Assembly: GCA_002269645.1 (NCBI GenBank)
Contig: NIVC01002048.1
Coordinates: 1 to 64,000, forward strand
Direction of reading: 5' to 3'
DNA from: Macrostomum lignano
Lineage: Eukaryota
Length of the DNA: 64,000 nt
Part shown: positions 25,570 through 40,983 of the stretch, one piece after another
How the letters are laid out: each line of letters opens with the position of its first letter
Position numbering within the stretch: the first letter of the stretch is position 1
Position numbers and translations under genes: made by a program
Notes under the pieces: generated by a model
Database searches by the model: none
What the model was told of the DNA's origin: nothing
Seen by the model: only the letters and a program-made list of their open reading frames with translations

Positions 25570-25725
25570 ATGTCTGCTGCACAATCAGATGGTCAGGTGA
25601 CCATTGTGGATGCCATCAGGAATGTAGACCTATTAGACAACCTAGACACGTCTGATGATGTCTACAACATTGAGGCTGCGCCTGTGTCACTGCTATTGAA
25701 GCATGATGCAGATAGAAATTTTCAG
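25570..25725 (+). CDS. CYFIP: CYFIP exon 1
   Basis: ATG; [15 protein letters not shown]; CAG|GTTAGA. Confidence 0.93.
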
Positions 25726-28700
25726 GTTAGAGTTATTTATTCATCTTCCTAGAGCAGTACTTCTTGTAGGAGCAGTTGGGATATTCATCATCATAGATTC
25801 CCTGAGAAGTCGTGAAAGGGGTATTCATCCTCATAGATTTCCTGAGAAGTCCTGATGGATATTCATCGTCATTGATTCCCTGAGAAGTCCTGATAGGGAA
25901 ATTCATATTCATAGATTCCCTGAGCAGTTTTGAGAGGGATATTCATCCTCATAGATTCTCTGAGTAGTTATGAGAGGGATATTCATCCTCATAGATTCCC
26001 TGAGTAGTTATGAGAGGGATATTCATCCTCATAGATTCCCTGAGCAGTTTTGAGAGGGATATTCATCCTCATAGATTCCCTGAGTAGTTATGAGAGGGAT
26101 ATTCATCCTCATAGATTCCCTGAGTAGTTATGAGAGGGATATTCATCCTCATAGATTCCCTGAGTAGTTATGAGAGGGATATTCATCCTCATAGATTCCC
26201 TGAGTAGTTATGAGAGGGATATTCATCCTCATAGATTCCCTGAGTAGTTATGAGAGGGATATTCATCCTCATAGATTCCCTGAGCAGTGTAAAGCACGCA
26301 GGCTCACAATTGAATCCTACAGGACCGCGGCGCTTACGTAGTGGGCGTGGCCAAGTACATGGAGGAGGCGGCCTCGCACGCCGAGATGACGGAGCTGCTA
26401 AAAGAAGGCGAGGAATACGCCGTGATGCTGTACACCTGGCGCTCGTGTTCTCGAGCCCTGCCCCAGATTAGGTCGAACGAGCAGTCTAATAAAGGAGAAA
26501 TACACGAGCGCACTGTTGAAGTGTTGCAGCCGTACGCTGTTAAGCTTATGAATTTTATGCTGTTCCAGGTAAGCAAACTGTCAGTGGTTGGCAAAGGTTT
26601 AACTTTAAAGAGTACTACACCTCAAATGTGGCACACTGAGGGCACACTGAGGACACAACACAGGGGGCACACTGAGGACACAACACAGGGGGGGGGCACA
26701 CTAAGGGCACAACACGGGGCACACTGAGGACACAACACAGGGGGCACACTAAGGGCACACTGAGGGCACAACACAGGGCACTGGCACTCTGAGGGCACAA
26801 CACAGGGGGCACACTGAGGACACAAACACAGGGGGGCACACTGAGGGCACAACACGGGGCACTCTGAGGGCACAACACAGGGGGCACACTGAAGGCACAA
26901 CACGGGGCACTCTGAGGGCACAACACGGGGCACTCTGAGGGCACAACACGGGGCACTCTGAGGGCACAACACGGGGCACTCTGAGGGCACAACAAAGGGG
27001 TCACACTGAGGACACAACACAGGGGGCACACTGAGGGCACAACACAGGGGCGCACTGAGGGCACAACACAGGGGGCACACTGAGGACACAACACAGGGGG
27101 CACACTGAGGACACAACACAGGGGGCACACTGAGGACACAACACAGGGGGGGGGGCACACTGAGGGCAGGCTCTCGAGAGGGTGCCAGTCGGGCGACTCC
27201 GGCACACTTGCATGTAGTTCCGCATTTTATTCTAGGCTCGAGCCATTGGCCGGTTCTGTCAGGATGTCCGCCGACTGTGCTTGAATATGCGCAAGCAGGA
27301 CTTCGTTAGTGAGGCCTATCTGCTCACTATGGGCAAAATGTTAGACATGTTTGCCGTGTTGGACGAACTTAAAAATATGAAAGCATCGATGAAGAATGAT
27401 TATTCGCACTATAAACGGGCTGCTCAAACTCTCAGGCGAATGACCGACCCTTCGGTGAGTTGGTGCTTTTGGTGTTGGTTTCTGTTGTCATTAAGCATTC
27501 CTATGCCTTTAGTATCCGCCCTTATCCCCCGGTCCTTCAGCTGGGCCGCCGCTTCCATCCGCCCTTCATGCTCCGGTCCTTCAGCTGGGCCGCCGCTTCC
27601 ATCCGCCCTTCATCCTCCGGTCCTTCAGCTGGGCCGCCGCTTCCATCCGCCCTTCATGCTCCGGTCCTTCAGCTGGGCCGCCGCTTCCATCCGCCCTTCA
27701 TCCTCCGGTCCTTCAGCTGGGCCGCCGCATCCATCCGCCCTTCATGCTCCGGTCCTTCAGCTGGGCCGCCGCTTCCATCCGCCCTTCATCCTCCGGTCCT
27801 TCAGCTGGGCCGCCGCTTCCATCCGCCCTTCATGCTCCGGTCATTCAGCTGGGCCGCCGCTTCCATCCGCCCTTCATCGGATTTCATCCTCCGGTCCTTC
27901 AGCTGGGCCGCCGCTTCCATCCGCCCTTCATCCTCCGGTCCTTCAGCTGGGCCGCCGCTTCCATCCGCCCTTCATCCTCCGGTCCTTCAGCTGGGCCGCC
28001 GCTTCCATCCGCCCTTCATCCTCCGGTCCCTCAGCTGGGCCGCCGCTTCCATCCGCCCTTATCCCCCGGTCCTTCAGCTGGGCCGCCGCTTCCATCCGCC
28101 CTTCATGCTCCGGTCCTTCAGCTGGGCCGCCGCTTCCATCCGCCCTTCATCCTCCGGTCCTTCAGCTGGGCCGCCGCTTCCATCCGCCCTTCATGCTCCG
28201 GTCCTTCAGCTGGGCCGCCGCTTCCATCCGCCCTTCATGCTCCGGTCCTTCAGCTGGGCCGCCGCTTCCATCCGCCCTTTCGTTACCTTGCCGTTTCTGT
28301 GACTAAATCTGCCAATTTTATCAAACCCGCAGGTGCTGCAAGACGCCCAGAACCTGACAATGTTTTTGGCTGAAATGAACAAAATTCGCAAGACGCTAAA
28401 AGAAGAATTGCAGAAAATCGATAGCTTCGAATTGCTGTTTGCTGAAATTCTGAACACAGCCGTGCTGATGTATGAAACTAAACAATACGTGTTCCCAAGC
28501 GAAAAGCACCTGTTAGTTAAAGTAATCGGATTCTGCATCTTCCTCATCAATACCAGCGCCACTGTTAATGTTAATCGGCTAGACTCTAAAAAGCGTATTA
28601 GTCTGGCCAAGGTACGTTCTCGCGAGTTTCGTTGTCTGTCCATCTTCGAGATTATAAATGTAAAATGCAAAATGTTATCGTGTATTAATAGCTTAACTGT

Positions 28701-40700: not shown

Positions 40701-40983
40701 CGGTCAGGAGCGCCGATTCGAACTGTTGGACTTCTCTTATCACCTGCTGCGGGTGAACAAGTTCGACCAGTTGGAGGGCTCTCAGATGGGCTTCTCGCTC
40801 AAGGCTATGGCCGATAGGATCAGGAAATTTCAAATTCTTAACGTCCAGCAACTGGCTGCCGTTGGCCGGTACGCCAGGCGGGACCAGCAGCAGCAGCTGG
40901 CGGATGCTGAGCAGGTGCGCTGCTTCGACTGTCCTCGGCTGCCTGACGAGGAGGGCGAAGACGCCGCTGATGAGGCCTGGTAG
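25570..40983 (+). CDS. CYFIP: CYFIP / Sra-1 / PIR121 (WAVE regulatory complex, FMRP-interacting) gene, 13 exons, 1297 aa
   Basis: Exons 25570-25725, 26323-26568, 27236-27454, 28333-28611, 29757-30086, 31797-32030, 32305-32556, 32848-33297, 33962-34330, 34853-35173, 37967-38245, 39783-40070, 40513-40983. All are GT-AG and splice into one stop-free frame. Hallmark motifs: [73 protein letters not shown]. Confidence 0.97.
25780..26285. repeat. 40-bp minisatellite, CYFIP intron 1
   Basis: TGAGAGGGATATTCATCCTCATAGATTCCCTGAGTAGTTA. Confidence 0.93.
26323..26568 (+). CDS. CYFIP: CYFIP exon 2
   Basis: [13 protein letters not shown]...[18 protein letters not shown]; CAG|GTAAGC. Confidence 0.95.
26630..27170. 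repeat. Variable-length (about 22-25 bp) minisatellite, CYFIP intron 2
   Basis: GAGG(G/A)CACAACACAGGGGGCACACT family. Confidence 0.9.
27236..27454 (+). CDS. CYFIP: CYFIP exon 3
   Basis: [15 protein letters not shown]...[13 protein letters not shown]; TCG|GTGAGT. Confidence 0.95.
27510..28280. repeat. 44-bp GC-rich minisatellite, CYFIP intron 3
   Basis: CCGGTCCTTCAGCTGGGCCGCCGCTTCCATCCGCCCTTCAT(C/G)CT. Confidence 0.95.
28333..28611 (+). CDS. CYFIP: CYFIP exon 4
   Basis: [13 protein letters not shown]...[13 protein letters not shown]; AAG|GTACGT. Confidence 0.95.
28845..29680. repeat. 31/27-bp minisatellite, CYFIP intron 4
   Basis: GGGTTGCAACATTTCGCTAAAATTGCACTA(A/T) and a shorter AATCTAA variant. 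Confidence 0.95.
29757..30086 (+). CDS. CYFIP: CYFIP exon 5
   Basis: [17 protein letters not shown]; CAG|GTGTGT. Confidence 0.93.
30165..31760. repeat. 23-bp minisatellite, CYFIP intron 5
   Basis: CTACCTGTAGAATCCTCCATAAA. Confidence 0.96.
31797..32030 (+). CDS. CYFIP: CYFIP exon 6
   Basis: VLDAFTWKL...[16 protein letters not shown]; CAG|GTTAGT. Confidence 0.95.
32305..32556 (+). CDS. CYFIP: CYFIP exon 7
   Basis: [19 protein letters not shown]...RPVAPNSTQ; CAG|GTTGGG. Confidence 0.93.
32593..32665. repeat. (GTCT)n microsatellite, CYFIP intron 7
   Basis: Direct reading. Confidence 0.9.
32848..33297 (+). CDS. CYFIP: CYFIP exon 8
   Basis: [11 protein letters not shown]...[17 protein letters not shown]...[10 protein letters not shown]; CAT|GTAATA. 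Confidence 0.96.
33298..33922. repeat. 44-bp minisatellite, CYFIP intron 8
   Basis: GGGCTGAATCTGATTATAGAGCGGCAAGATCAAAGACAGTAATT. Confidence 0.95.
33962..34330 (+). CDS. CYFIP: CYFIP exon 9
   Basis: [11 protein letters not shown]...[20 protein letters not shown]; GAG|GTGAGC. Confidence 0.95.
34393..34830. repeat. 24-bp minisatellite, CYFIP intron 9
   Basis: TTCCCTAATTATCCCTACTGACAG. Confidence 0.95.
34853..35173 (+). CDS. CYFIP: CYFIP exon 10
   Basis: [16 protein letters not shown]...[11 protein letters not shown]...[10 protein letters not shown]; GCC|GTGAGT. Confidence 0.95.
35228..37870. repeat. 21-bp minisatellite, CYFIP intron 10
   Basis: AGACAC(A/G)CAGACCCAATCA(T/A); the CCCTATCT variant appears only in the right half. 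Confidence 0.97.
37967..38245 (+). CDS. CYFIP: CYFIP exon 11
   Basis: MRGLLEGTM...[10 protein letters not shown]...QSFREFGN; CAA|GTGAGA. Confidence 0.95.
38308..39740. repeat. Purine-rich minisatellite of about 21 bp, CYFIP intron 11
   Basis: GAGTGACAGGAATGG(A/C/G)ACAGA family. Confidence 0.95.
39783..40070 (+). CDS. CYFIP: CYFIP exon 12
   Basis: ETLPKPFV...[16 protein letters not shown]; TCG|GTTAGT. Confidence 0.92.
40163..40428 (+). mobile_element. tRNA-derived SINE with CORE-like domain in CYFIP intron 12
   Basis: A-box-like TAGCAGCTAGTTG, tRNA-like arm, B box GGTTCGATTCC (40218-40228), GTCCTTGAGCAAAACACTTAAC resembling the MIR/CORE consensus GACCTTGGGCAAGTCACTTAAC, (ATT)n tail. Confidence 0.65.
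40513..40983 (+). CDS. CYFIP: CYFIP exon 13 (terminal)
   Basis: [31 protein letters not shown]...FGEGLQWAG; TAG at 40981-40983. Confidence 0.96.
   Translation, partial: PVWTVQETPKNGVMFVDECLEFHRIWSAIQFACCIPPGEHEFTVEELFGEGLQWAGAALLVLLGQERRFELLDFSYHLLRVNKFDQLEGSQMGFSLKAMADRIRKFQILNVQQLAAVGRYARRDQQQQLADAEQVRCFDCPRLPDEEGEDAADEAW

Follow-up and report, generated by a model that had tools for sequence, protein, structure and literature searches.

An all-phase-0 CYFIP gene in the flatworm Macrostomum lignano and the apparent loss and regain of its introns

The origin of new spliceosomal introns in animals is unsettled, most animal introns being ancient, and a gene whose introns follow an unusual pattern raises the question of whether that pattern was inherited or was built anew. 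Such a gene lies in the stretch of DNA analysed here (64,000 nucleotides (nt) of the free-living flatworm Macrostomum lignano, positions 1 to 64,000 of the forward strand of contig NIVC01002048.1, assembly GCA_002269645.1; hereafter, the window). It is a CYFIP gene of 13 exons and 12 introns (25570-40983, + strand), rebuilt from the sequence by means of GT-AG splice signals and open reading frames; each of the 12 introns is GT-AG and in phase 0, and the length of every exon is divisible by 3. The positions of these introns, compared with those of other animals, give good support to the view that ancestral introns were lost and other introns then gained within the lineage, which we take to be the real finding; the cause of the phase-0 monopoly is a separate matter, on which the evidence is more divided.

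The product of the gene, 1297 amino acids (aa) long, aligns over its full length with human CYFIP1 (3p8c_A; 1344 bits, E = 0, residues 8-1282 against 3-1245), and BLASTP gives 100% identity with the GenBank protein BOX15_Mlig029510g1 (P0001), the sole differences being G55S and one extra Gln. This near-identical protein carries both PF07159 (DUF1394/CYRIA-B, Rac1-binding) and PF05994 (FragX_IP), as members of the CYFIP / Sra-1 / PIR121 family do; the window gene is the M. lignano orthologue of CYFIP/Sra-1. Its exons are the following:

Exon 1: 25570-25725, + strand, 156 nt, ATG at 25570; the N-terminus aligns with human CYFIP1 from residue 3
Exon 2: 26323-26568, + strand, 246 nt
Exon 3: 27236-27454, + strand, 219 nt
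Exon 4: 28333-28611, + strand, 279 nt
Exon 5: 29757-30086, + strand, 330 nt
Exon 6: 31797-32030, + strand, 234 nt
Exon 7: 32305-32556, + strand, 252 nt
Exon 8: 32848-33297, + strand, 450 nt
Exon 9: 33962-34330, + strand, 369 nt
Exon 10: 34853-35173, + strand, 321 nt
Exon 11: 37967-38245, + strand, 279 nt
Exon 12: 39783-40070, + strand, 288 nt
Exon 13: 40513-40983, + strand, 471 nt, TAG stop at 40981-40983

An earlier, sequence-only reading of the window had listed the same 13 lengths, all of them multiples of 3, and had placed all 12 introns in phase 0; the independent rebuild reproduced the list exactly, and the rebuild and the RNA-seq-guided model of BOX15_Mlig029510g1 give the same junctions. 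Threaded exactly on its own contig, that model shows identical 13 exons and 12 phase-0 introns, the introns differing in length. The GenBank annotation of M. lignano was derived from RNA-seq via StringTie/TACO (PMC5730564), and the junctions thus have support at the transcript level that is independent of the first reading. That the pattern is an artefact of annotation, true transcripts using different junctions, is extremely improbable; the junction support does come from RNA-seq-guided annotation, but the model on the other contig has identical junctions, every junction is GT-AG with good consensus, each placement is unique under the GT-AG rule, and the product aligns without gaps with its orthologues at 11 of the 12 junctions.

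The age of the introns can be judged from their positions. The CYFIP proteins of six animals were threaded on their own loci and all introns were placed on one alignment; the resulting map holds nine sequences, including annelid, mollusc, spider, fluke, tapeworm, lamprey and a M. lignano paralogue described below. The six outgroups have the following introns:

Owenia (annelid): 30 introns, phases 0/1/2 = 19/4/7
Haliotis (mollusc): 27 introns, phases 0/1/2 = 18/3/6
Trichonephila (spider): at least 21 introns, phases not tallied
Paragonimus (fluke): 18 introns, phases 0/1/2 = 13/2/3, 14 of the 18 at ancestral sites
Taenia (tapeworm): 14 introns, phases 0/1/2 = 8/3/3
Petromyzon (lamprey): 30 introns, phases 0/1/2 = 20/3/7

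In the Owenia model (L003), the intron after aa 730 is GC-AG and its flanking exons are of 37, 38 and 34 nt, which may be an annotation quirk. The ancestral set is made up of the 27 positions common to at least two of Owenia, Haliotis and Trichonephila, 18 of which are in phase 0. Two of the 12 window introns occupy ancestral positions (same alignment column and same phase): the one after aa 134, common to Owenia, Haliotis, Trichonephila, Paragonimus and Petromyzon, and the one after aa 572, common to Owenia, Haliotis, Trichonephila and Petromyzon. None of the six outgroups, nor the paralogue, has an intron at any of the remaining ten positions (after aa 52, 207, 300, 410, 488, 722, 845, 952, 1045 and 1141); their distance to the nearest outgroup intron is 12-111 nt, and the alignment is gap-free at nine of the ten sites, the exception being aa 1141, in a gapped stretch with the nearest outgroup intron ~111 nt off. 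The introns, with the tandem arrays that most of them contain, are given below (^ marks a splice junction):

Intron 1: 25726-26322, + strand, phase 0, new, after aa 52; CAG^gttaga...cag^G; 40-nt x 12.8 minisatellite, 86% of the intron
Intron 2: 26569-27235, + strand, phase 0, ancestral position, after aa 134; 25-nt array
Intron 3: 27455-28332, + strand, phase 0, new, after aa 207; 44-nt x 17 array (87%)
Intron 4: 28612-29756, + strand, phase 0, new, after aa 300, 18 nt upstream of an ancestral phase-0 site; 31-nt x 28 array
Intron 5: 30087-31796, + strand, phase 0, new, after aa 410, 12 nt upstream of an ancestral site; 23-nt x 70 array (94%)
Intron 6: 32031-32304, + strand, phase 0, new, after aa 488; 274 nt, without array
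Intron 7: 32557-32847, + strand, phase 0, ancestral position, after aa 572; only a short (TGTC)n run (25%)
Intron 8: 33298-33961, + strand, phase 0, new, after aa 722; 44-nt x 14 array from 4 nt past the donor (94%)
Intron 9: 34331-34852, + strand, phase 0, new, after aa 845; 24-nt x 19 array
Intron 10: 35174-37966, + strand, phase 0, new, after aa 952, 12 nt upstream of an ancestral site; 21-nt x 120 array (95%)
Intron 11: 38246-39782, + strand, phase 0, new, after aa 1045; 21-nt x 69 array (93%)
Intron 12: 40071-40512, + strand, phase 0, new, after aa 1141; without array in the window copy; degenerate tRNA-related SINE-like insert

The sequence-only reading had itself raised the possibility that these positions are simply the ancestral phase-0 subset, retained. 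Ancestral CYFIP introns are indeed two-thirds phase 0 and two window introns do stand at ancestral phase-0 sites, but with ten of the 12 positions new, and present in none of six intron-bearing outgroups, the intron map refutes this explanation, to which we give next to no credence. Intron sliding was rejected as well: three of the new introns are 12-18 nt from ancestral phase-0 sites, yet the residues between are conserved, and over the whole range of offsets (12-111 nt) the new sites are on average no nearer to the old ones than expected by chance. Since 14 of the 18 introns of the fluke are retained ancestral ones, the purge is specific to the Macrostomum lineage and does not concern flatworms generally.

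A second M. lignano CYFIP gene, BOX15_Mlig033928g1 (P0002; L001, 3001-11553), shares 71% identity with the window gene (1188 ungapped columns compared), and every one of 300 neighbour-joining bootstraps pairs the two as sisters. This paralogue begins with an intron-free exon of 2443 nt and has four introns, after aa 814, 930, 1069 and 1194 (phases 1, 2, 2 and 0, respectively), none of them common to the window gene or to any outgroup. The lineage-specific gain after ancestral loss that the sequence-only reading had proposed is therefore upheld by the map, on which ten positions are absent from all outgroups and from the paralogue and two are ancestral. As to the order of events, nearly all of the ~27 ancestral bilaterian CYFIP introns were lost in the Macrostomum lineage after the split from the parasitic flatworms, which keep most ancestral introns; no more than two phase-0 introns (those after aa 134 and aa 572) outlived the purge. 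The gene then duplicated, the window copy gaining ten introns and the paralogue four, independently; in the simplest history, most of the loss would have preceded the duplication, and the paralogue would afterwards have shed the two old introns left to it. Another possibility is that the paralogue arose as a retrocopy and gained its four introns later; under either history, at least 14 introns were born in the Macrostomum lineage in two CYFIP genes.

An intron-free, full-length CYFIP is also present in a metagenome contig (P0005; L005, 10001-13783; ENA ERZ25070167, 27.6 kb), and is either a retrogene or derived from an intron-poor spiralian. It was considered as a possible relative of Macrostomum and rejected; its product is 77% identical to the Owenia protein and groups with the annelid, and it is therefore uninformative on the Macrostomum lineage.

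How unusual it is to find all 12 introns in phase 0 depends on the phase-0 share taken as null. A soft splice-motif model summed over the coding sequence gives a share of 0.48-0.49; all AG^ sites (144/56/65 in phases 0/1/2) give 0.54, AG^G sites (45/7/15 in phases 0/1/2) give 0.67, and the outgroup CYFIP introns, i.e., an ancestral-intron null, 0.57-0.72. Across null models with a share of 0.48-0.67, the probability of 12/12 ranges from 1.4e-4 to 8e-3, and that of 10/10, for the new introns alone, from 6e-4 to 2e-2; the figure of one in 4096 given by the earlier reading is correct provided that the share is 0.5. The phase-0 monopoly is thus unusual, not extreme. Local introns offer a further comparison: one of the four in the paralogue is in phase 0, and three of the five in the RIM-binding-protein (RIM-BP) gene of the window (784-12271, + strand, with FN3 and SH3 exons), whose phases are the following:

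Junction 4017/5848, + strand: phase 1
Junctions 6251/7365, donor 7949 and 11377/11921, + strand: phase 0
Exon starting at 11052, + strand: entered in phase 1

The mixed phases ascribed to neighbouring genes by the sequence-only reading are borne out in part, for RIM-BP, two of whose introns are in phase 1; a bias specific to the CYFIP gene, also claimed there, is weakly favoured by Fisher tests against the local introns (0.011; ~0.006 for 12/0 vs 4/5), which apply to small samples and to a pattern noticed after the fact. Pure chance, that is, an ordinary animal phase mix (about half phase 0) of which 12/12 is a tail event met by scanning many genes and patterns, has to be weighed here. The probability of 12/12 is 2.4e-4 at a share of 0.5; the gene models of M. 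lignano number in the tens of thousands and average ~5 introns (PMC5730564), and an estimate from gene and intron numbers leads one to expect about one all-phase-0 gene of such kind per genome; moreover, the other local introns are mixed, as just seen. Against this, the sites are non-random both in sequence, with Gln before six and AG before seven of the 12 introns, and in spacing (P ~1e-5), which argues that some site or selection bias acted on the CYFIP gene, and we consider chance unlikely, though still arguable, as the whole explanation.

The junctions themselves suggest what such a bias may have been. As counted by the first reading and found again here, seven donors follow AG (introns 1, 2, 4, 5, 6, 7 and 9) and six follow a Gln codon (CAG five times and CAA once); Gln makes up 5% of the residues, yet precedes six of 12 introns (binomial ~1e-5) and four of the ten new ones, and four of the 12 downstream exons begin with GT. 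The coding sequence has a G+C content at third codon positions (GC3) of 0.70, and 54-67% of its AG^ or AG^G sites are on codon boundaries. In the window copy, new introns would have been fixed mainly after AG-ending codons (CAG for Gln, AAG for Lys, GAG for Glu) with G or GT next to them; the codon-boundary bias of such sites, together with chance, could then have placed all ten new introns in phase 0 and, with the two retained, brought the count to 12/12. In our opinion, the phase-0 monopoly most likely comes from chance together with a preference for codons that end in AG, the gene being rich in GC3, and the entire account, comprising loss, duplication, independent gain and this preference, appears fairly probable, with ample room for doubt.

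Several observations weigh against it. Under the soft splice-motif model, 10/10 comes out at ~7e-4, and motif bias plus chance is then a stretch; AG^G occurs at only five of the 12 junctions, introns 3, 8, 10, 11 and 12 not following AG at all; the paralogue has its 2443-nt exon and mixed phases; both of the "ancestral" positions could be parallel gains; and the flatworm outgroups comprise a fluke and a tapeworm, which do not date the gains. In addition, the empty homologous sites of the paralogue read CAA^GAT, AAA^ATT, CTA^ATA, CAG^GAT and GAA^GTC, and the intron-free gene is thus often without the motif (CAA^GAT, AAA^ATT, CTA^ATA, GAA^GTC), so that the exonic motif may have been tuned after insertion, being a consequence and not a cause. 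The codon-aligned proto-splice sites invoked by the sequence-only reading accordingly stand as far as AG before seven of 12 introns is concerned, and falter at the AG^G count and at these empty sites.

A different use of the same sequence context is conceivable, namely, an insertion or duplication that copies a target containing AGGT (by tandem duplication, by staggered-break repair or as the target-site duplication of a transposon), the phase simply following the placement of AGGT. A 9-nt direct repeat AG^GTGAGCT (AGGTGAGCT) spans both junctions of intron 9 and a 7-nt direct repeat GCAG^GTG both junctions of intron 5, with shorter repeats at intron 4 (AG^GT, at both ends) and intron 3 (G^GTG); these fit such an origin, as do the GT at the start of four of 12 downstream exons, the 8/1/3 distribution of AGGT sites in phases 0/1/2 and the SINE-like insert of intron 12. 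The repeats are, however, mostly splice consensus, and in five introns they measure 0-3 nt; the outgroups conserve Val-Ser at the intron 9 site, GTGAGC being partly explained by coding; and neither similarity among introns nor similarity between introns and flanking exons beyond 9 nt is found. A copy extending past GT, by 3-7 nt, is seen in introns 3, 5 and 9 only; older similarity would be decayed or overwritten by the arrays. No terminal inverted repeat was noticed by eye at the ends of intron 9, no dedicated inverted-repeat search having been run. As a general explanation, the copying of an AGGT target is very unlikely, while the repeats at introns 9 and 5 hint at gain by duplication or staggered-break repair.

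The second peculiarity of the gene is its even division. The coefficient of variation (CV) of exon size is 0.29, while randomly placed introns would give 0.90 (P ~1e-5, or 9e-5 with exons <50 nt excluded), with exons ranging from 156 to 471 nt; in the intron-rich orthologues the CV is 0.38-0.49 and in the paralogue 1.05. Such evenness suggests that, besides the preference for AG-ending codons, fixation may also have favoured the splitting of the longest remaining exons. A more directed process, giving introns both codon-aligned and evenly spaced (through symmetric exons, through even size imposed by nonsense-mediated decay or exon definition, or through periodic insertion), would account for the meeting of two independent oddities in one gene, i.e., the 12/12 in phase 0 (1.4e-4 to 8e-3) and the CV of 0.29, lower than in intron-rich orthologues. 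The idea of regular spacing driven by decay exists in the literature, nonsense-mediated decay predicting regular intron spacing in newly colonised genes (PMC3584928). The exon lengths, on the other hand, have no common period, and the sister paralogue has neither property; by tolerating a long exon and mixed phases, it indicates that even spacing and phase 0 are no general requirement of the genome. Selection for frame-preserving exon skipping, put forward by the sequence-only reading, finds no support, as no exon-skipped product is on record among the database proteins; CYFIP being a single folded scaffold, moreover, a product shortened in frame by 52-150 residues would probably be of little use. 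Shorter M. lignano database proteins (P0003, P0004, P0006, P0013) were considered as exon-skipped isoforms and rejected, their gaps lying off the exon boundaries; they look like faulty older predictions. A directed process of this kind is, on balance, improbable.

The content of the introns bears on the question of what made them. Ten of the 12 CYFIP introns hold a tandem array of their own, with periods of 40, 25, 44, 31, 23, 4, 44, 24, 21 and 21 nt; the array makes up 73-95% of the intron in nine of them, and arrays account for 82% of all CYFIP intron bases. Most introns thus consist of a short unique shell, ~50-60 nt on the 5' side and 20-90 nt on the 3' side, surrounding a private minisatellite whose swelling has brought them to 0.3-2.8 kb. 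In a second, near-identical genome copy (L002, 10001-24392) the junctions are the same and the intron lengths very different (other copy vs window: 1701 vs 667 nt for intron 2, 483 vs 1710 for intron 5, 504 vs 1537 for intron 11), the differences between genome copies reflecting changes in array copy number, as they do in neighbouring genes. Within the scope of the 64-kb window and two other loci, no sequence similarity among CYFIP introns was detected by blastn of each intron against the whole window, which returned only low-complexity and array matches; a shared introner family was rejected on these grounds, and no single mobile-element family made the CYFIP introns.

The minisatellites are not peculiar to the CYFIP gene, an idea that was examined and rejected: tandem arrays occupy 48% of the window, against 15% reported genome-wide, and 44% of the window outside the gene, and nearly every intron of CYFIP, of the paralogue and of RIM-BP has its own unrelated minisatellite in a short unique shell. 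Their abundance outside the gene makes them a property of the region and not of CYFIP. Intron 12 contains two tRNA T-loop-like motifs GGTTCGATTCC (40124-40134 and 40218-40228), found also at 19893-19903, and a 40-nt block of it recurs at 19971-20010, so that its insert looks like a member of a degenerate, tRNA-derived SINE-like family. Two possible reasons for keeping introns were discarded. The hosting of non-coding RNA was rejected, since 25500-41100 has no Rfam match even at E = 0.1; in-frame intron retention was dropped, since only five of the 12 introns have a length divisible by 3 and reading through intron 1 ends at a stop after 8 codons.

Elsewhere in the window, the RIM-BP gene is matched by no protein of the GenBank annotation, but only by an older, partly frameshifted UniRef model (P0121); a 32-nt microexon (10872-10903), known from an older protein model, has no GT-AG junction that would link it in frame to the exon at 11052, and either another small exon is missing or the older model is wrong. 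Two further features were recognised:

42743-42815, + strand: intact tRNA-Val (AAC), 1.8 kb downstream of CYFIP (ARAGORN; Rfam 63 bits)
61258-63599, + strand: Gypsy-like LTR retrotransposon with long open frames for reverse transcriptase and integrase

Comparison with known systems sets the CYFIP case apart from each in some respect. In the tunicate Oikopleura dioica (PMC3488318), as here, most ancestral positions are gone and most introns are lineage-specific; its new introns, however, are even over the three phases and mostly tiny, while those of M. lignano CYFIP are ten out of ten in phase 0 and swollen by minisatellites, the M. lignano side of this comparison being two genes and not a genome. 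In the alpha-amylase genes of Basidiomycetes, colonised by introns after horizontal transfer (PMC3584928), a long exon has likewise been invaded by many introns, and about half of the genes tend to regular spacing, which has been discussed via exon-size limits and nonsense-mediated decay; these introns nonetheless have no phase-0 excess (28 of 64 are in phase 1) and little insertion motif, and CYFIP, unlike alpha-amylase, is an animal gene passed on by vertical descent, whose own introns were lost first. The proto-splice-site model of Dibb and Newman (PMC3488318) resembles what is seen here in having AG ahead of the intron and G behind it, and 67% of the AG^G sites of the coding sequence are in phase 0; yet only five of 12 introns fit AG^G, and the model alone predicts 12/12 at <=0.008. 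Introners (of Micromonas, fungi and dinoflagellates) share with the present case the many recent gains in one lineage; the similarity from intron to intron that defines them was not detected in CYFIP by the blastn comparison with the window, and no terminal repeats were noticed, by eye, at the ends of intron 9.

No description of intron gain, intron loss or introners in Macrostomum was found in the literature searched, and M. lignano CYFIP is one of the rare cases among animals in which introns were lost on a large scale and others then gained. With 12 and four introns and none in common, the two sister genes of this genome constitute a datable natural experiment on intron gain, in an animal for which a working transgenesis method is available (PMC5730564). 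Should chance not suffice to explain the phase-0 monopoly and the even spacing, both would be relevant to the question of the phase-0 excess and to that of exon size and nonsense-mediated decay as forces shaping intron fixation. It is also conceivable, albeit quite unlikely, that M. lignano has undergone a large-scale and fairly recent gain of introns, under a rule favouring codon-aligned, even positions in some genes, each intron soon acquiring, or being seeded by, a minisatellite of its own; were this true genome-wide, the birth of spliceosomal introns would become directly amenable to study in a laboratory animal capable of transgenesis.

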